Below are positions 5,885 to 21,374 of a stretch of 23,609 nt of DNA, piece after piece. A model generated the notes under the pieces. It was given only the letters and a program-made list of their open reading frames with translations, made no database searches and was not told the origin of the DNA. A program made the translations under genes and the position numbers. Within the stretch, counting starts at the first letter, position 1. The number at the start of each line of letters is the position of its first letter. The stretch lies in sequence record OP999020.1; one strand, 5' to 3'.

Positions 5885-5931
5885 AAGGTTATTGTATCTT
5901 TTTAACCTATATTTTATGAATAATATTTAGT

Positions 5932-14539: not shown

Positions 14540-17212
14540 TTATAAGAGTTGTGATTGTGCTCTTTGTGTTGCTGAGCTAGAAGAAAGTACTGCTGGTGCT
14601 ACTGATACTGCTGCATCACCTACTACGTTTATTACTGCATTTATCGCATTAACTGCATTGGCATATGTTGCGTTTTGTGTGTAATTTTGACCAGTTATCG
14701 TGTTTAATGCGTTGATGAGATTTAGATAATATTTTGCTTGTTCTTTATACTGTATTGCAGAATTAGTATCTCCATTTTTTAAAGCCTCATATGCCTTTAC
14801 AGCATAATAATATAAAGATTCGAGTAATCCATTCATCTTCATTGTAAATGTGCTTCCTTGCTCTTGTGATAAAGCTATGATGTAAGGGGCATATTGTGGT
14901 GCTGCAGCTATTGCATCTGCATAATCATTATTCATTAAGTAATTTGCGACTGTTTGATTATATTCTATTTGTACTGCTTGTGATGAGTTGTTTGGCGAGA
15001 ATGCGGATACGATGTTATTAATGTAAGTGCTTAATCCATTAAGGTATGGATTATTAGTATTAGCTAATGCCGAAAGTTGGTTAACAATGAACTGTGGATT
15101 TTGCCCTTGTGCAAATGCCGTATCAAAGTCTTGTAACAAATTCTGAACCTGATTGATTGTATTTATTGCCTGATTGATCTCGGCTGTATTATTAGTATCT
15201 GATTTTAACTGATTCAATATCTGAAGGGCCTCATTTAGATTACCGCTTTGTAGTGCGTTTTGGAGATTTGTAGTTAGATTCTGCGCGTTTGTACCTACTT
15301 GCTGTTGTGCGGTTTGTAATAATTGTGCTACAGTATTTGCCTCATTATTTAGATAATTAGCCAAATACGAAGTGATTGGATTACTGCCCACTTGATTTGC
15401 GATTTGTTGTAATTGATTTGCAATTTGCTGTAATGTGTTAACATCTGATGAAGTGTATTGCCCTTTATTTTGTTCTTGCTGTATTGTACTAACGGCATTA
15501 TTGAACTGCTGCTGTATACTGCTCAATATCTGAATTGCTTGAGAGATTGTACTTGCATCTTGTGTATCGCCTATTTGATTAGCAATTTGCTCACCACTCT
15601 GTAAAGCGGAAATTGCTGCATTTATATTACCGTTCTGTAAATCGTTTTGTACTTGACTAATTAAGCTTTGGAATTGTTGTTGCATTTGCTGTAATTGTTT
15701 CTGTTGTTGCTGCTGTAAGTAGTTTTGTATGTTAGTTTGTACTTGTTGCGCAGTACTCGCCAAATTGCTTATATAGCTAGATAAGGAAGAAGTGATTTGA
15801 TTACTGCCTATACTGTTGTTTATGTTGTTTAGTGTATTAATAGCATTTTGAATGGTCTGTAGATCACTTTGTGTATAACTACTCTTATTCTGTTCTTGTT
15901 GTATTGTACTGGCAACACTGCTTAATTGCTGCTGTATATTGTTTAATATCTGAATTGCTTGTGAGATTGTGTTTGCAGCCTGCGTATAACCAATTTGATT
16001 TGCGAGTTGGTCACCACTCTGCAAGGCAGAAAGAGCGTTACTTATGTTACCACTCTGTAGGTTGTTCTCAGCTTGAGAAACATAGTTTTGTACTTCTTGC
16101 TGTAAGTAGTTTTGTATGTTAGTTTGTACTTGTTGCGCAGTACTCGCCAAATTGCTTATATAGCTAGATAAGTAAGAGGTAATAGAATTGTTGCCTATAC
16201 TGTTATTTATACTGTTTAGTGCACTAATAGCATTTTGAATAGCTTGCAAATCGCTAGGTGTATAACTACTCTTATTCTGTTCTTGCTGTATTGTACTGAT
16301 AGCATTATTGAGCTGTTGTTGAATGTTATCTAGTATTTGCGTTGCCTGTGAGATTGTGTTTGCATCTTGTGTATCGCCTATTTGATTAGCAATTTGCTCA
16401 CCACTCTGTAAGGCAGAAAGAGCACCACTTATGTTACCGCTTTGTAAATCATTTTCAGCTTGAGAAATGTAGTTCTGTACTTGCTGTGTATTTGGTCCAG
16501 AACTGCCTCCACCACCGCCTGAACCACCAGAACCACCGCTTGAACCACCACCGCTTCCAGAGCCACCACCACCACCAGAGCTTGGCGGACTGGAACTACC
16601 CCCGCCACCGCCTGAACCACCACCGCCGGAGTTTGGATTAGAACTTCCACCACCGCCTCCAGAACCAGGGCCCGAGCTGTTTGGTGAGCTATTAGGACTG
16701 CTTGATTGGTTATTAAGGTAGTTTTGTATTTGTTGTTGAACTGACTGTGCTTGTTGATATAGACTGTTTAAATAATTTGCAAGAGGACCAGCATATGGAT
16801 TATTATTGTTTGCTTCTGCGTCTAAGCCATTAACAACATTCTCCAAATTATTTACAATTGTGTTAATTGTATTCAAATCGTTTTGTGTATATGAACTTTG
16901 TTGTTGTAATTGAAGTATTGTGTTTCTGTATTGATTATAGTTATATGCAGTAAGAGCATTTAGGACTGACTGCGCATTATAAGCATCGCCTTGATTACCA
17001 GTTTGCTTATCATATTGTATTATTCCATTTAGAATATCTTGCGCATCAGCAGGAGAAGCACCAGCACTAACAACTTGCCCATTTTGAACTGTTTGTGTAC
17101 ATTCTGCAGGACCATATCCATTACTGTATAGCGGAGGGGGATTAATATAAAATACACTTTGGTAAGCCATTAACCAACCTTGATTTGTGCATGGTTGCGA
17201 ATTTGACGACAT
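14540..17212 (-). CDS. 890-aa Q/N/S-rich helical-repeat protein with a Gly/Ser linker, probable virion (tail/filament) protein
   Basis: ATG start with GAGGAG upstream. Contains a Gly/Ser/Pro low-complexity linker (about 16490-16700), three ~129-aa repeats plus degenerate partial copies, and very few charged residues. Confidence 0.88.
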   Translation of the reverse strand: MSSNSQPCTNQGWLMAYQSVFYINPPPLYSNGYGPAECTQTVQNGQVVSAGASPADAQDILNGIIQYDKQTGNQGDAYNAQSVLNALTAYNYNQYRNTILQLQQQSSYTQNDLNTINTIVNNLENVVNGLDAEANNNNPYAGPLANYLNSLYQQAQSVQQQIQNYLNNQSSSPNSSPNSSGPGSGGGGGSSNPNSGGGGSGGGGGSSSPPSSGGGGGSGSGGGSSGGSGGSGGGGGSSGPNTQQVQNYISQAENDLQSGNISGALSALQSGEQIANQIGDTQDANTISQATQILDNIQQQLNNAISTIQQEQNKSSYTPSDLQAIQNAISALNSINNSIGNNSITSYLSSYISNLASTAQQVQTNIQNYLQQEVQNYVSQAENNLQSGNISNALSALQSGDQLANQIGYTQAANTISQAIQILNNIQQQLSSVASTIQQEQNKSSYTQSDLQTIQNAINTLNNINNSIGSNQITSSLSSYISNLASTAQQVQTNIQNYLQQQQQKQLQQMQQQFQSLISQVQNDLQNGNINAAISALQSGEQIANQIGDTQDASTISQAIQILSSIQQQFNNAVSTIQQEQNKGQYTSSDVNTLQQIANQLQQIANQVGSNPITSYLANYLNNEANTVAQLLQTAQQQVGTNAQNLTTNLQNALQSGNLNEALQILNQLKSDTNNTAEINQAINTINQVQNLLQDFDTAFAQGQNPQFIVNQLSALANTNNPYLNGLSTYINNIVSAFSPNNSSQAVQIEYNQTVANYLMNNDYADAIAAAPQYAPYIIALSQEQGSTFTMKMNGLLESLYYYAVKAYEALKNGDTNSAIQYKEQAKYYLNLINALNTITGQNYTQNATYANAVNAINAVINVVGDAAVSVAPAVLSSSSATQRAQSQLL
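15290..16483 (-). repeat. Three tandem intragenic repeats with a 387-bp (129-aa) unit
   Basis: 75-bp identity between 15711-15785 and 16098-16172 (offset 387). 52-bp identity between 15553-15604 and 16360-16411 (offset 807 = 2x387+33). Outer boundaries are approximate. Confidence 0.9.
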
Positions 17213-17271
17213 TTCACTCTCCTCTCTCTAAAAATAATAAAACAAAATTAAAAAGAGTCACTCAGAAGGCT

Positions 17272-17318
17272 TTTTGGCAAATTTACCAAAACTGTCTGAG
17301 TGTTCATAATTCTCCAGT
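17272..17318 (-). repeat. Copy D of the dispersed element, inverted and facing the 890-aa gene
   Basis: The minus strand reads CTGGAGAAT-N-TTTTGGTAAAT with box spacing 28 (29 in copy B). It includes the near-palindrome TTTTGGCAAATTTACCAAAA (17272-17291). Confidence 0.6.
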
Positions 17319-17470
17319 TTTGTAGAAGGTTTTTCCTCATGTAGCCTTGCTTTCTAATTTCGAACTTTTGCTATATACAGGAACTTCGAACTTATGATGT
17401 AAAAAATTAGGCATTAAGTTGTTTCACAAGTTTGAAAAAAATACAGAACGTTTTTTCGATAAATTCACCA

Positions 17471-17540
17471 AATTCTTACTTGTTGAACATATTTTGGTAA
17501 ATCTGCTGAATTGTCATGACAATTCTACCAATTTGGAGAA
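17471..17540 (+). repeat. Copy C of the dispersed element, with a perfect 18-bp palindrome
   Basis: 58/70 identity to 5784-5853; GAATTGTCATGACAATTC at 17508-17525. Confidence 0.85.
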
Positions 17541-17580
17541 AAAGCTAGTCTTTTTTAATTCATTGTGTTTACTTAAACCT

Positions 17581-18081
17581 ATGAGTGAGATAACTCCATC
17601 AGACCCACTGCAACGTATCTCATCTAATTTTATAATAATATTGAATAGTTTACCGCCTGCATATCAATCAGAAACAATACAATACATTAAGACAACTCTA
17701 CTCAACAACGGCCTACAGCAAATTGTGCCACAATCTTTTAGTCAATTAGTTCCCTCTACTACTCCAGCAGCTATTCTTTCATCTATCCAAAAAGAAATAA
17801 CTACTGGACAAGGTGAGAAAATAAAAATACAGCAGTTACCAACATTAGTAGAGCAAACGCAAAACCTAATTGAGCAACTGCCGTCAGTAATTTCAAGAAC
17901 TCAACTGAGTGTTGAAGAAACGCCTGCAGTGCTTGCAGCAATTATTGCTGTACCATATATTAAACAAAATATTTTACCAAAGGTTATTCAAACATCATCT
18001 AGTTCAATAAAGCAACTGCCTAGTGTGCTTGGTAATACTGACAGTGAAGTTTTAATATCGCCATTAGTAGTAAACCAATAA
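17581..18081 (+). CDS. Hypothetical protein, 166 aa (MSEITPSDPLQ...), with recurring QLP(S/T)(V/L) motifs
   Basis: The track's start at 17419 runs through the non-coding repeat element. ATG 17581 lies 23 nt after TTTTTTA (17551-17557). Confidence 0.78.
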   Translation: MSEITPSDPLQRISSNFIIILNSLPPAYQSETIQYIKTTLLNNGLQQIVPQSFSQLVPSTTPAAILSSIQKEITTGQGEKIKIQQLPTLVEQTQNLIEQLPSVISRTQLSVEETPAVLAAIIAVPYIKQNILPKVIQTSSSSIKQLPSVLGNTDSEVLISPLVVNQ

Positions 18082-18103
18082 AAGAAGAAGAATTTTAAAA
18101 AAA
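18082..18103 (-). terminator. Putative U-rich terminator of the 126-aa gene
   Basis: The minus strand reads T7 followed by ATTCTTCTTCTT. Oligo-T/pyrimidine tracts are the established Sulfolobales termination signal. Confidence 0.55.
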
Positions 18104-18132
18104 TCAAAAATATCTTTTTTGTTTTTTATTGT

Positions 18133-18513
18133 TTATGATTTGAAGAAGTTCAGTAGATACTTTATTGCTACACCGATTGCTGCTATTATTACTACTATTA
18201 TTACAATTTCGAAGATTGTGGATGATAAGCTAAGCGTGTTATTGATACCTTGTGTAACTTTCGTAGATATGTTACTATTTGCTGGTAATGTTGGGACTAA
18301 TGTTCCTCCAAGTATACCTATTAAGAAATATGCTACTACAATTAGAACAATGACAACGACTGCAGCCTTGGCAATGTTTAGGAAAGTATCACTATTAAAT
18401 TCTCCGCCACCGCCGCCTCCTCCACCGCCGCTTGATGATTTATAGAATCTTCCCAGCTTCTTTGTTGCCTTGGCTACTGCGTTATTGTAGGCATTTGTGA
18501 ATCCTCTTACCAT
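18133..18513 (-). CDS. Small hydrophobic two-helix hairpin protein, candidate spindle-shell major capsid protein (SMV1/SSV VP1-like architecture)
   Basis: 126 aa: basic N-terminal leader, Gly9 linker, two long hydrophobic helices, and a loop with N-glycosylation sequons (NIS, NNT). It is divergent from, and shares a symmetric promoter with, the p131-like gene. The structural assignment is inferred from architecture. Confidence 0.7.
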   Translation of the reverse strand: MVRGFTNAYNNAVAKATKKLGRFYKSSSGGGGGGGGGEFNSDTFLNIAKAAVVVIVLIVVAYFLIGILGGTLVPTLPANSNISTKVTQGINNTLSLSSTIFEIVIIVVIIAAIGVAIKYLLNFFKS

Positions 18514-18627
18514 GTTCTCTCGATTTTTTCTATATTGGTTAAAGTATAAAAAGACTCCTTAAACACGCTAACAATGGCTTAACGAGTCTTTTTATATTGC
18601 ATTTAAAAAAAGGTTTATTGAGCAAAA
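18514..18627. promoter_or_regulatory. Symmetric divergent promoter with a 13-bp perfect inverted repeat
   Basis: TATAAAAAGACTC (18545-18557) and GAGTCTTTTTATA (18584-18596). Each arm ends exactly 31 nt before its ATG (18513 and 18628). Confidence 0.8.
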
Positions 18628-19059
18628 ATGGCAAGAGAGGAACCATACAAGGGCGACTATGTAGGAGGAGTAGCTAAGGTATTACAAGGCTATTTTGCAA
18701 ACTACTATGGATACCCCGACGTTTCATTAAAGTTAGCTGGTGAAGAAGCAAATCTTAGTAGAACCGGGCATGCAAATGCAAAAGAAATAGTACATGAAAT
18801 GATAAAAACAATTAGAGAAGCTTCAAAACCAATAAGAAGAGGAAAAGGCTTCAAAGATGCATGGGTATATTTCAGTCAAGTTCCAGATAATGCACCACCT
18901 AACAGCACGGCATTACCACCAAATATTGCTCAGGCTGTACAACAGAGACTACAGGCATTATACTCACAGTTACTATCTACAAGAGCGGCTGCTAGTGAGG
19001 CAGCAAAAGCCCCAGCTTTCTCTCCTTCTCAAAGCTTAACTATGCCAGCTAATATGTAA
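18628..19059 (+). CDS. Bicaudavirus major virion protein, ATV p131 / STSV major structural protein family, 143 aa
   Basis: The N-terminus [42 protein letters not shown] matches the p131-family signature as I recall it (KGDY.GG..K...[13 protein letters not shown]). Confidence 0.88.
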
Positions 19060-19077
19060 AAAAGAAAGCTAAACTAA

Positions 19078-19107
19078 TTTTTTTATTTATATTTTATTCT
19101 TCTTCTT
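19078..19107 (+). terminator. Putative U-rich terminator of the 143-aa gene
   Basis: T7 (19078-19084) followed by ATTCTTCTTCTT (19096-19107), the same 12-mer that follows the divergent partner gene. Confidence 0.55.
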
Positions 19108-19148
19108 CTCAAGAAGGCTTTTTTATCTTTATAGTAGTAAGTTTAAGT

Positions 19149-21374
19149 ATGAAGTTTCAAAGAAGGTATTTATTCGTGTTAGCTTTTCTGATCTTTGTGG
19201 TTTCAACAATTGCCTCTGCGGCTATTCAACAAATAAACATCTTAATCAACATCCCACCATCATTAACTGGAAACAATTTGTTCTTTGTTATTCCATTGAA
19301 AACTAATAATAACATAATAACCAATAATAACTTTTACGTTATCAATAATTATGGCTATTATGAATACTCTTATCTTTTCTCATCCACTCCACCATTATTA
19401 ACAGTATACCAAGCACAGGCTACAAACACAACATATTATGTTACGTTTGGAAACGGAATAATACCACAATATGTCACAACTAATATATACTCGAACCTTT
19501 TCACATTCTATCTGATAAATACTACAATTTTTAATGTAAGTGGTGTTTCAGCAAGCGCTGGAATTGCGACCTTTGCAAACGATAGTCACCTTTGGTTCCA
19601 ACCATCTACGGTACGTTATGTTCCATCATCTGTCCTATTCCTTTACAATATTTTACCATCTGCAACCTTATCCGTTAGTCCATTAATATACTCTGGCCAA
19701 CCACTACAAGCTGGTGCTGCAGTATTCTTTAACCTATTTCAATCATCAACAACATACACATTCTCAGCGCAATATTTGAACGTACCTTACCTTTTCCTAA
19801 ATTATCTACAATATCCTACCCTACAAATAACTAACAATCATGTATCAATCAATGATTTCCCACCAGTGCCAGTGAAGCCAGTTTCCGAAGTGATAGTAAC
19901 TCAAAATGAAACAGTCATATCAAACGTGACTTTCCATACTACTCCAATTATCACTCCTTCATCATCGTTCTCAACGACTTATATAGCAACCTTTGCATCA
20001 ATCTATTCCCAGGCCGGTTCATTTGTATATGGTTTAGCCTCATTGATCTTCACTCAATCAATGATAAATGGTTCTAATCTCTACGCATTAGAAAATGGAA
20101 AATTTGTAACTGTAGGTGCTGCACCAACATCCTTATCCTTAGTTAATAATCCACAAATGTTTGTAGTAAACTTAGGTAATAATCCAAAGAACGTAACACT
20201 ATATGGAGTTCCAATAGGTTCTACGGTTGCTGTAACGTATTCAAATGGTACATCTAAAACGTTTATTGCACAAGGGCAAGTAGTTAATACTGTTGGCCCA
20301 TTGAAGTTAACTAATTATGGTATTCCAGCTGGTAGTGGAATTACTACAATGTCAATCACTTTGCCAGGCTCTCAAGAAATTTACACTGCACAAATAGGCT
20401 TTACCGATTTCGTTCACGCCTTTTATATAAATTTAACTAATGGTTTTGCGAGTGTAGATGTTAATGGTACGCAATTGGTTACACTTGGGCAAGTAGTTTT
20501 ACCAGCAAATGTTGTCATAGGAACACAGCAAGTTGGTTCAAACACTTACCTTCTTGGCCTTGTGCAGTCATATACTGGGCAAGTTTATAACTTCTTAGTA
20601 CCACTAAACTATCCAGTTTATAATGTTGTACCTTACGTAAAATATGTTACATATACCGGACAACCATTATTATTAACGGAAATAGGCGTTTATCCAGCAA
20701 ATGGCCTATTCTATACTCTGAATGGGCAACTTATACTTAGTGTTTCAACACCTTATTCAATTACTGCTACGGTGGAAACAATAGTTACATCGCCTGGCTT
20801 AACAGTTATGGTTAATAATGGTAAAGTAAACGTTTATACTAATTCTTCTGCATCTTCTTCAAATTTGGTAATAGAAGGGGCAAATGGTTACCAGCTACAG
20901 TTGATTTACCAAAACGTGCAAACTAATACACCAATAACATCAAACTATTACCCAGTTCAAATACCTTCTAATATGCCTGCCCTAGTTTCAATTGACCCAT
21001 CGTCGAGAGTAATAGTTGTTAATGCTAATGCTATCCAACAGCAACAGGCACAATATATTAGTCAAAAAGTAACTCTCAATCAACCATTAAACGTAACAAT
21101 AACCGCATTGCAAATTACGCCCCTAAAAGTACAATTACCACAAATAATGAATACTAACCAAATAGTTCAAATTACCACATACTATGCTTATGCAGCATTT
21201 GGGATTTATCTGATAAATAGAAATCTTGAAATCACAAACACGTTATGGTATGGATCAATGCTTTTGAGCTTACTTGGATTCATTGTAGCTATAATCGTTT
21301 CAAATCCAGCATTAATAACTGGCTCAATTTTCTTGCTTGTAGCTAGCTTTGGTTTGAGGTATTTTGGAAAATAG
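19149..21374 (+). CDS. Secreted, membrane-anchored beta-rich glycoprotein, 741 aa; candidate adhesion or receptor-binding virion protein
   Basis: Signal peptide (MKFQRRYLFVLAFLIFVVSTIASA), T/V/Y/N/S-rich charge-poor body, 13 N-X-S/T sequons counted, and C-terminal hydrophobic helices. TTTTTTA (19119-19125) lies 23 nt before the ATG. Confidence 0.85.
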   Translation: MKFQRRYLFVLAFLIFVVSTIASAAIQQINILINIPPSLTGNNLFFVIPLKTNNNIITNNNFYVINNYGYYEYSYLFSSTPPLLTVYQAQATNTTYYVTFGNGIIPQYVTTNIYSNLFTFYLINTTIFNVSGVSASAGIATFANDSHLWFQPSTVRYVPSSVLFLYNILPSATLSVSPLIYSGQPLQAGAAVFFNLFQSSTTYTFSAQYLNVPYLFLNYLQYPTLQITNNHVSINDFPPVPVKPVSEVIVTQNETVISNVTFHTTPIITPSSSFSTTYIATFASIYSQAGSFVYGLASLIFTQSMINGSNLYALENGKFVTVGAAPTSLSLVNNPQMFVVNLGNNPKNVTLYGVPIGSTVAVTYSNGTSKTFIAQGQVVNTVGPLKLTNYGIPAGSGITTMSITLPGSQEIYTAQIGFTDFVHAFYINLTNGFASVDVNGTQLVTLGQVVLPANVVIGTQQVGSNTYLLGLVQSYTGQVYNFLVPLNYPVYNVVPYVKYVTYTGQPLLLTEIGVYPANGLFYTLNGQLILSVSTPYSITATVETIVTSPGLTVMVNNGKVNVYTNSSASSSNLVIEGANGYQLQLIYQNVQTNTPITSNYYPVQIPSNMPALVSIDPSSRVIVVNANAIQQQQAQYISQKVTLNQPLNVTITALQITPLKVQLPQIMNTNQIVQITTYYAYAAFGIYLINRNLEITNTLWYGSMLLSLLGFIVAIIVSNPALITGSIFLLVASFGLRYFGK

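Follow-up and report, generated by a model that had tools for sequence, protein, structure and literature searches.

Why would two neighboring genes of an archaeal spindle virus start from opposite arms of a perfect inverted repeat? The question is raised by a 23,609-nucleotide contig of the virus STSV3 (OP999020.1; hereafter the window, meaning the whole stretch that was analyzed), whose source is a Tengchong hot spring and whose genome is reported to be incomplete (PMC10101205). In this window, a gene for a 126-amino acid (aa) protein with two long hydrophobic helices (the hairpin gene) and a gene for a 143-aa protein of the P131 family (the P131-like gene) diverge from a 114-bp spacer that carries a 13-bp inverted repeat. 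An earlier reading of the letters alone (the original prediction) had described the locus as a self-contained, mirror-symmetric unit with twin promoters and twin terminators, and had suggested that it might define a late-promoter motif. We consider it likely that the region consists of two archaeal transcription units that stand back to back, are monocistronic and act independently, each driven by its own copy of the same promoter and each ending at a run of seven T residues (T7).

Two Opposed Copies of a Probable Promoter

We found all the predicted coordinates to be correct, including those of the two open reading frames (ORFs), the spacer, the repeat, the 31-nt distances and the axis of symmetry. 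The arms TATAAAAAGACTC (18545-18557) and GAGTCTTTTTATA (18584-18596) are perfect complements over 13 bp. Each arm ends 31 nt from its ATG, and the dyad axis coincides with the midpoint between the two ATGs, at 18570.5. With one mismatch, the inverted repeat extends to 18 nt per arm at 94% (18545-18562 / 18579-18596). The exact 13-mer has only two occurrences in the window, and among 20,000 dinucleotide-shuffled versions of the spacer, 11 contained a perfect inverted repeat of at least 13 bp (P = 5.5e-4). The parts of the locus are as follows, with variable columns counted in the six-genome alignment described below:

18133-18513, minus strand: hairpin gene, 126-aa ORF, homologue of STSV1 ORF39, STSV2_36 and ATV ORF104b
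18514..18544, minus strand: hairpin-gene leader region from TATA to ATG, 31 nt; 12 of 31 columns vary; predicted start near 18521
18545..18562, minus strand: left arm, the hairpin-gene promoter, TTAAG-GAGTC-TTTTTATA; 0 variable columns; TATA annotated at the orthologous site of STSV1
18563..18578, no strand: center between the arms; variable at 7 of 16 columns, more than any other segment of the spacer
18579..18596, plus strand: right arm, the P131-like gene promoter, TTAAC-GAGTC-TTTTTATA; 0 variable columns; TATA annotated at the orthologous site of STSV1
18597..18627, plus strand: P131-like gene leader region from TATA to ATG, 31 nt; 8 of 31 columns vary; predicted start near 18619-18620
18628-19059, plus strand: P131-like gene, 143-aa ORF of the RIP/P131 family; "coat protein" in GenBank

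As expected of an archaeal core promoter, the TATA octamer TTTTTATA stands 31 nt 5' of each ATG and is invariant in the relatives. The whole element is a virus-specific TATA promoter of the form (C)TTAA-S-GAGTC-TTTTTATA, in which 18-21 bases are strongly conserved. Downstream of the TATA box, the leader region of the hairpin gene contains the A-run AGAAAAAA (minus strand, 18524-18531) followed by C-GAG at -9 to -6, and that of the P131-like gene contains an A7 run (18605-18611) followed by T-GAG at -9 to -6.

Conservation of the Arms among Relatives

The divergent gene pair was compared in seven members: STSV3, L036, STSV2, L035 (a Logan contig), STSV1, L034 and STSV4. Three of these STSV-like loci came from a protein search. 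Across the region, DNA identity to STSV3 is 86% for STSV2, 84% for STSV1 and 73% for the STSV4 contig, and the six members with spacers of 113-114 bp were aligned. ATSV, ATV and SMV1-4 are more distant relatives. Scans of IMG/VR and metagenomes for further P131-type relatives returned only STSV1, STSV2, ATV and ATSV-like contigs, and the ATSV-like loci have no divergent hairpin gene.

Two of the sequences come from metagenome-assembled genomes (MAGs). L036 (JAPDLV010000038.1), ~99% identical to STSV3 in the region, is an STSV-like contig in a MAG labelled "Candidatus Rehaiarchaeum fermentans", and L034 (JAVZAY010000041.1) is an STSV-like viral contig inside a MAG labelled "Metallosphaera sp.". 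The presence of viral contigs in these MAGs probably reflects a binning artefact or is a sign of infected cells.

Both 13-mers are exact in six of the seven relatives and differ by one mismatch in STSV4. In the six-genome alignment, none of the 36 arm columns varies, compared with 27 of the 78 columns in the leaders and center (Fisher P = 8e-6); the variable fraction is 39% in the left leader, 44% in the center and 26% in the right leader, and 15-32% over the first 60 coding bases. The arms are the most constrained sequence of the region. Together with the TATA boxes annotated in STSV1, this supports the reading of each arm as a conserved promoter element.

The symmetry that the original prediction expected in close relatives was found in part. 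Both arms are kept in all seven relatives, at arm-to-ATG distances of 30-31 nt, and the symmetry is exact in five; in STSV1 and L034 the distances are 30 and 31 nt, an asymmetry of 1 nt. In ATV, which had been named as a place to look, the corresponding genes lie on the same strand, 5.5 kb apart. STSV4 has 118 nt between the arms, compared with 26 in the six other genomes, and both of its arm-to-ATG distances are 30 nt. Furthermore, TTAA is changed to TCAA in both STSV4 arms, in parallel.

The longer STSV4 gap (L004 1236-1353) exceeds the others by 92 nt and includes a partial promoter copy, AACGAGTTTTCC. GenBank ORF3 of STSV4 (1207-1419), which spans this gap, is probably spurious. An Rfam scan of 17200-19300 gave chance-level matches only (E ~1), with no known RNA family in the spacer.

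A Promoter Class of Structural-Module Genes

Is the element confined to this spacer? A third exact copy of the 13-mer lies 22 nt upstream of STSV1 ORF53, ~11 kb away, as a single copy. Its STSV2 homologue, STSV2_51, is likewise preceded by a single copy with one mismatch, ~11 kb off. The three promoter copies of each genome are near-identical, including their flanks, with the consensus CTTARCGAGTCTTTTTATAT.

To define promoter classes, we used the 70 nt upstream of every annotated STSV1 and STSV2 gene and of the window ORFs. This survey revealed at least three families of long, near-identical STSV promoters. One, taataccgt...agaaagMtttaaata, precedes the ORF1-11 paralogues; a second has the sequence atagaaagttttataagcttaaat; the GAGTC-TTTTTATA class makes up the third, with a word unlike those of the other two. 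Promoters sharing at least 13 bases make up ~1% of gene pairs, mostly inside the three classes, and such sharing is typical of STSV genomes.

The generalized word GA[GC][TA]CT(4-6)A occurs seven times in STSV1, five times in STSV2 and three times in the window. Promoters account for 6/7, 5/5 and 3/3 of these sites, respectively, where the word precedes the start of an ORF34, 37, 39, 40, 41 or 53 homologue by 23-36 nt (binomial P 1e-6 to 1e-10); the ORF38 homologue carries the weaker word AGTCTTTTT(T)A. The motif thus marks a promoter class, with its full form also at ORF53 and weaker forms at the ORF34, 37, 38 and 41 homologues. The distribution supports the predicted promoter motif as one of neighboring structural-module genes. 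Its designation as "late" is unsupported. The members outside the spacer are:

5897..5904, plus strand: TATA-like core TCTTTTTA of the 2346-aa gene (STSV1 ORF34 homologue), which it precedes by 27 nt; weak class member; GAGTCTTTTTAAC at the orthologous site of STSV1
17247..17259, minus strand: promoter-class motif GACTCTTTTTAAT, 34 nt upstream of the 890-aa gene (ATG 17212; ORF37 homologue)
17547..17557, plus strand: promoter-class motif AGTCTTTTTTA of the 166-aa gene (ORF38 homologue), 23 nt before its conserved start at ATG 17581
17581..18081, plus strand: the 166-aa gene, convergent with the hairpin gene; PHROG 25734 covered 1-166 of 166
19117..19127, plus strand: promoter-class motif GGCTTTTTTAT, 21 nt upstream of the 741-aa gene (ATG 19149; ORF41 homologue); TATA annotated in STSV1

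The motif of the 890-aa gene is the identical GACTCTTTTTA at the orthologous site in STSV1 and STSV2, and that of the ORF41 homologue is GAGACTTTTTTA in both. Words related to the arms had been predicted before the 890-aa and 166-aa genes. They exist, at 17247-17259 (minus strand) and 17546-17558 (plus strand), with three mismatches each; as matches alone they are not significant, since the 13-mer at three mismatches is not enriched in the window (12 matches vs. 19.3 expected).

Could GAGTC be a GANTC methylation site? We rejected this possibility by eye: class members have GAGAC, TAGTC/TAATC and GTATC, and ATV has AAATC/CAATC.

Several annotations around these promoters deserve comment. ORF17 of OP999020 is annotated from TTG 17419 (220 aa), and the conserved start is ATG 17581, from which its length of 166 aa equals that of STSV1 ORF38 and STSV2_35. 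STSV1 ORF41 is annotated from 43571; an in-frame ATG 27 nt upstream (L002 3244-3246; record 43544) is conserved with STSV2 and STSV3 and lies 23 nt after the GAGACTTTTTTA motif. In addition, a perfect 16-bp palindrome, AATTGTCATGACAATT, is located upstream of the 166-aa gene (17509-17524), and words resembling it (gtcatgacaatt..gtaaatttgg) occur in many intergenic regions of STSV1 and STSV2.

Oligo-T Runs at the 3' Ends

The original prediction also proposed twin terminators, composed of a T7 run and an identical 12-mer after each gene. The features concerned are:

18082..18093, minus strand: (TTC)n-type 12-mer ATTCTTCTTCTT, 3' flank of the hairpin gene; abuts the stop of the convergent 166-aa gene; word not conserved
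18097..18103, minus strand: T7 run (A7 on the plus strand), 29 nt after the hairpin-gene stop; predicted oligo-T terminator; invariant in 7/7 relatives
19078..19084, plus strand: T7 run, 18 nt after the P131-like stop; predicted oligo-T terminator; invariant in the 6/6 relatives with sequence there
19096..19107, plus strand: (TTC)n-type 12-mer ATTCTTCTTCTT; copy number differs in a 99%-identical strain
19105..19116, plus strand: small dyad CTTCT-ca-AGAAG, just upstream of the ORF41-homologue promoter; one pair covaries

A T stretch is an established archaeal termination signal (PMC7237163), and both T7 runs agree with the oligo-T pattern of at least five T residues shortly past the stop on the coding strand. 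Runs of at least T7 are rare in the window (two on the plus strand, four on the minus strand), and T5 to T10 runs are found after many further genes of STSV2.

The terminator proposal is supported as far as the invariant T7 after each gene and is not supported for the identical 12-mer as a shared element. The window contains ATTCTTCTTCTT exactly at the two predicted places and at no others. The 12-mer is a (TTC)n tract, however, and it is different in every relative. Downstream of the hairpin gene, STSV1, STSV2, L034 and L035 read ATTCTTTTCTTC.... Downstream of the P131-type gene, the tract of L036 is shorter by a single TTC unit, that of STSV2 reads TCTTCTCCTCC, and no similar tract is present in STSV4.

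Could each T7 run and its 12-mer nevertheless form a specific bipartite terminator element common to both genes? The window has just two occurrences of the 11-mer TTCTTCTTCTT, both at these genes, where independent, identically distributed bases would give an expectation of 0.03; it is also present after the T-runs of ATV P131 and SMV1 gp03, and a 12-mer is common to only 0.5% of the pairs of 3' flanks in STSV1 and STSV2. Pyrimidine content after T-runs at terminator positions is mildly raised as well (0.58-0.60 vs. 0.55), a general property of these genomes. Set against these points, the orthologous flank pairs of STSV1 and STSV2 lack a common 12-mer, and the 11-mer occurs six times in ATV, several of them inside annotated genes. 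The 3' spacing is not mirrored either: the T7-to-12-mer distances are 3 and 11 nt, and the stop-to-12-mer distances are 39 and 36 nt. Finally, the tract on the P131 side makes up the left half of the small dyad, which belongs to the next promoter region (CTCCT-ta-AGGAG in STSV2, CTCCTT-ctt-AAGGAG in L034 and CTTCT-ca-AGGAG in STSV1). A bipartite terminator is, in our judgment, improbable. Because the tract differs in every relative and the STSV1 and STSV2 flank pairs share none, the exact match in STSV3 would be a short-lived coincidence of two pyrimidine-rich tracts. The small dyad at 19105-19116 could itself be a regulator site or an RNA stem.

The Two Proteins

The 126-aa protein has a basic N-terminus, then a Gly run and then two long hydrophobic helices. 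A single-sequence AlphaFold2 model places helices at 2-25, 41-71 and 83-125, with low confidence (mean pLDDT 68), and a Foldseek comparison of this model with the PDB gave zero matches. The protein belongs to PHROG 16261 (E = 1e-38), together with ATV ORF104b; STSV1 ORF39, STSV2_36 and ATV ORF104b are labelled "virion structural protein". Its layout of a basic N-terminal segment, two hydrophobic helices and a polar loop is common to SMV1 gp03 (PDB 7RO2). Direct BLASTP between the two is weak (E = 1.7), and a possible connection through ATV gp59 has pairwise E values of 6e-6 and 3e-4. A profile of seven hairpin-protein sequences had 7RO2 as its sole PDB match, yet at E = 5.2, and the two proteins are in separate PHROGs (16261 vs. 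28873). In bicaudaviruses, a seven-strand shell is built by a very hydrophobic protein (PMC10589707). To regard the 126-aa protein as the putative shell protein is a reasonable reading.

The 143-aa protein matches Pfam PF22238 (E = 1.3e-34; 118.8 bits vs. a cut-off of 27) and the solved members 5EQW of ATSV (E = 6e-43) and 3FAJ of ATV (E = 1.3e-18). The P131 family was formerly regarded as the major coat protein and, in bicaudaviruses, has been reassigned to the nucleoprotein core (PMC10589707). The 143-aa protein also has a weak match to the ATV RNA polymerase inhibitor RIP/ORF145 (PDB 7OQ4 chain Z, E = 0.0016), which fits the common ancestry of RIP and P131-type proteins (PMC5123050). The products of the two divergent genes are unrelated to each other, one being a membrane-type helical hairpin and the other a P131 helical bundle.

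In GenBank, ORF18 of OP999020 is placed on the plus strand (18119-18445, 108 aa, TTG start), whereas the conserved gene is the minus-strand 126-aa ORF. The hairpin gene is annotated on the wrong strand in this record.

Promoter Sharing in ATV, SMV1 and ATSV

Do hairpin and P131-type genes share a promoter in other lineages? In ATV, AATCTTTTTAA has five occurrences, all upstream of genes: gp57, gp59, gp62 (P131), gp63 and gp64, several of which are annotated as virion structural proteins. ATV P131 and gp63 point away from each other, with an 11-bp inverted repeat made up of their two promoters. Furthermore, gp59 (the hairpin gene, as its long ORF) and P131 share the 19-mer AAATCTTTTTAAGCGCTTG, which has no other occurrence in the genome and lies 29 and 31 nt from the respective ATGs; the two genes are 5.5 kb apart on the same strand.

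The ATV gp59 gene (ORF104b; L015 42204-42671, minus strand) probably starts at 42671 and encodes 155 aa. Only this long gp59 matched the PHROG 16261 profile over 1-149, and the AATCTTTTTAA promoter lies 29 nt upstream of its ATG.

In SMV1, many virion-gene promoters share the palindrome CTCAAACATATGTTTGAG between the TATA box and the ATG. It looks like the operator of a dimeric regulator. The form CTCAAACA(T/G)ATGTTTGAG was observed in at least 10 promoters, including that of the capsid gene gp03, again between TATA and ATG (L014/L017; record 866, 2391, 4682, 16861, 19074, 31387 and others). One copy is inside the annotated gp11, the P131 homologue; because of this position, the true start of gp11 is probably a downstream ATG with its own promoter. 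In SMV1a, gp03 (hairpin capsid) and gp11 (P131 homologue) fall into one "full-time/late" expression class, and throughout infection, starting at 0.5 h, gp03 has the highest transcript level (PMC12199143). These data lend no support to "late" as a description of such genes.

The P131-type gene of ATSV, gp45, has a 23-nt promoter, GCAAAGCAATATCCTTAAAAACT, with an exact second copy 33 nt upstream of gp73:

L033 15898-15920 (record 51898-51920) and 34279-34301 (minus strand): ATSV gp45/gp73 promoter copies, exact match

ATSV was considered as a third lineage of the hairpin-P131 pairing and was rejected, as the gene behind the second copy, gp73, encodes a soluble 110-aa protein and not a hairpin. 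Counted by lineage, two show the pairing, a third would be compatible with it and a fourth lacks it.

Proposed Mechanism and Alternatives

In promoters of the Sulfolobales, the center of the TATA box lies ~26 nt upstream of the start site, the proximal element is A/T-rich, and transcription begins at a purine that follows a pyrimidine. The spacer can be read in these terms. In each core promoter, the TATA box TTTTTATA is preceded by GAGTC at the presumed TFB-recognition position, with the TTAA-S extension further upstream, and is followed by an A-rich stretch and by Y-GAG, ~8-9 nt before the ATG. Host TBP, TFB and RNA polymerase would assemble separately on each arm and transcribe outward, starting near 18619-18620 (plus strand) and 18521-18522 (minus strand), with the conserved Y-GAG as a possible initiator. 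Since this initiator would lie so close to the ATG, the mRNA leaders would be very short (~8-9 nt). With 26 bp between the two GAGTC words, the two pre-initiation complexes should not overlap, and RNA polymerase would terminate at the T7 runs as intrinsic oligo-T terminators. Consequently, the inverted repeat and the near-equal arm-to-ATG distances would arise simply because the same promoter-plus-short-leader design faces opposite ways twice. Given two identical copies on which purifying selection acts strongly, both abundant virion proteins, the hairpin and the P131-type protein, probably receive the same promoter strength and regulation. We infer the use of TBP and TFB, the start sites, the leader lengths, the termination and the matched expression from the sequence.

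Some observations weigh against these two ordinary, independent units as a complete account. GAGTC is unlike the A-rich, TFB-recognition element (BRE)-like AGAAAG of another STSV class, and that TFB recognizes it is an assumption. Conservation continues for 10 nt on the upstream side of the TATA box, beyond what contacts of TBP and TFB alone would lead one to expect, and an extra factor may bind there. The parallel TTAA-to-TCAA change in the STSV4 arms hints at co-evolution with a reader of the extension. In addition, the ATSV gp73 case indicates that hairpin-P131 promoter pairing is not universal in the family.

Could each arm, then, be a TATA box plus the site of a dedicated sequence-specific factor that reads TTAA-S-GAGTC? 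Such a factor, whether a virus-encoded activator or repressor or a host TFB paralogue, would switch on the hairpin, P131-type and ORF53 genes together. The invariant block upstream of the TATA box, the three near-identical copies per genome and the parallel change in STSV4 would all fit, as would the private 19-mer of the ATV hairpin and P131 genes, which is distinct from the subclass of gp57, gp63 and gp64; the palindromic operator of the SMV1 virion genes is a precedent for regulator sites in the family. On the other hand, this analysis identified no candidate, the STSV element is not itself palindromic, the parallel change happened just once, in the genome of STSV4, and selection for maximal basal promoter strength alone could explain the conservation. 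We regard a dedicated factor as possible but rather unlikely. A broader form of the idea is more doubtful still. In at least two bicaudavirus lineages that have diverged deeply, STSV-type viruses and ATV, the hairpin and P131-type genes share a private, near-identical promoter that differs from one lineage to the other; this would imply that it evolves in concert with a dedicated reader of the sequence beside the TATA box, a viral factor or a particular host TFB, which would fix the ratio of shell to core protein.

The mirror-symmetric device of the original prediction would be a different matter, namely one palindromic operator with a single dimeric regulator at the dyad axis. The perfect dyad and the coincidence of its axis with the midpoint of the ATGs in five of seven relatives suggest it, but the arm centers are 39 bp apart, the center is the most variable part of the spacer, and the fixed short spacing that such an operator would need is absent in STSV4, which retains the arms and their distances to the ATGs with 118 nt between them. 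Moreover, the element stands as a single copy at ORF53, and the paired ATV copies are direct and distant. We consider the single operator very improbable; it is already contradicted by STSV4 and ORF53, and with these observations, the exact symmetry in only five relatives and the non-adjacent ATV pair, the claim of a self-contained symmetric unit is not supported. A DNA cruciform or an RNA hairpin formed by the arms was rejected on the 118-nt separation and the single ORF53 copy. The symmetry could also be a relic of an inverted duplication, of the promoter or of the whole unit, with no present function. The arms are alike over ~21 nt (18/21), and the leaders are weakly similar, with the A-run and GAG in the same register and 13-15 of 31 positions identical; the partial copy AACGAGTTTTCC in the STSV4 insert indicates that the promoter element does get duplicated. 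Nevertheless, the resemblance of the leaders is marginal (P = 0.01-0.2), the products of the two genes have no relationship, and neutral arms would not stay invariant while their surroundings vary at 26-44% of columns; a duplication could well explain the origin of the second copy and not its maintenance. We therefore give a functionless relic little credence. As an origin, duplication of the promoter is plausible, whereas the ancient inverted duplication of a whole transcription unit, put forward in the original prediction, is not supported by what can be aligned beyond the ~21-nt arms.

Significance

The mechanism that we favor, two back-to-back units with standard archaeal TATA promoters and oligo-T terminators, is ordinary and involves no new mechanism. 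Both TATA boxes were already known from their annotation in the STSV1 record; new from this analysis are the promoter class in its extended form, the ORF53 promoter as a third copy and the pairing found across lineages, with ATV. The result is a testable definition of a promoter class for virion/structural-module genes of STSV-type viruses, with ~20 invariant bases, three full copies per genome and several weaker ones. It would be useful for re-annotation, as public records contain wrong starts for several genes and one wrong strand assignment, and for strong or co-regulated expression cassettes in Sulfolobus/Saccharolobus. It also bears on the question of how a virus that lacks an RNA polymerase of its own assigns genes to different classes of expression.

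Comparison with Known Systems

In the STSV1 record (AJ783769 / NC_006268), the TATA boxes of the ORF39-ORF40 spacer are annotated at 42948-42953 (minus strand) and 42994-42999 (plus strand). These are the outer ends of the same arms, and the TATA boxes of ORF37, 38 and 41 are annotated too. The record marks a 6-nt TATA only, without the 18-21-nt identity, the third copy at ORF53 or the class-specific GAGTC.

T-stretch terminators without a hairpin are described for Haloferax and S. acidocaldarius (PMC7237163). The T7 runs of STSV3, known here from sequence, resemble these archaeal intrinsic terminators in having the T run shortly past the stop, and there is nothing unusual about them.

The hairpin and P131 promoters of ATV are paired, like those of STSV, but are neither adjacent nor inverted. 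The flanking words differ as well, with GCGCTTG downstream in ATV and TTAAC-GAG upstream in STSV. In SMV1, as in STSV, virion-gene promoters have a motif in common; that of SMV1 is a palindrome of the kind typical for the site of a dimeric regulator, and its hairpin and P131 genes are not adjacent.

Long, near-identical, virus-specific promoters, comprising TATA, BRE and flanks, have been reported to precede a functional class of genes, with STSV1 and STSV2 among the viruses listed, and consensus regulatory motifs mark early anti-defence genes, often with repressor sites (PMC11065993). The STSV family taataccgt...agaaagMtttaaata appears to correspond to this anti-defence promoter motif. The GAGTC-TTTTTATA class, in contrast, has a different word and precedes virion/structural-module genes.

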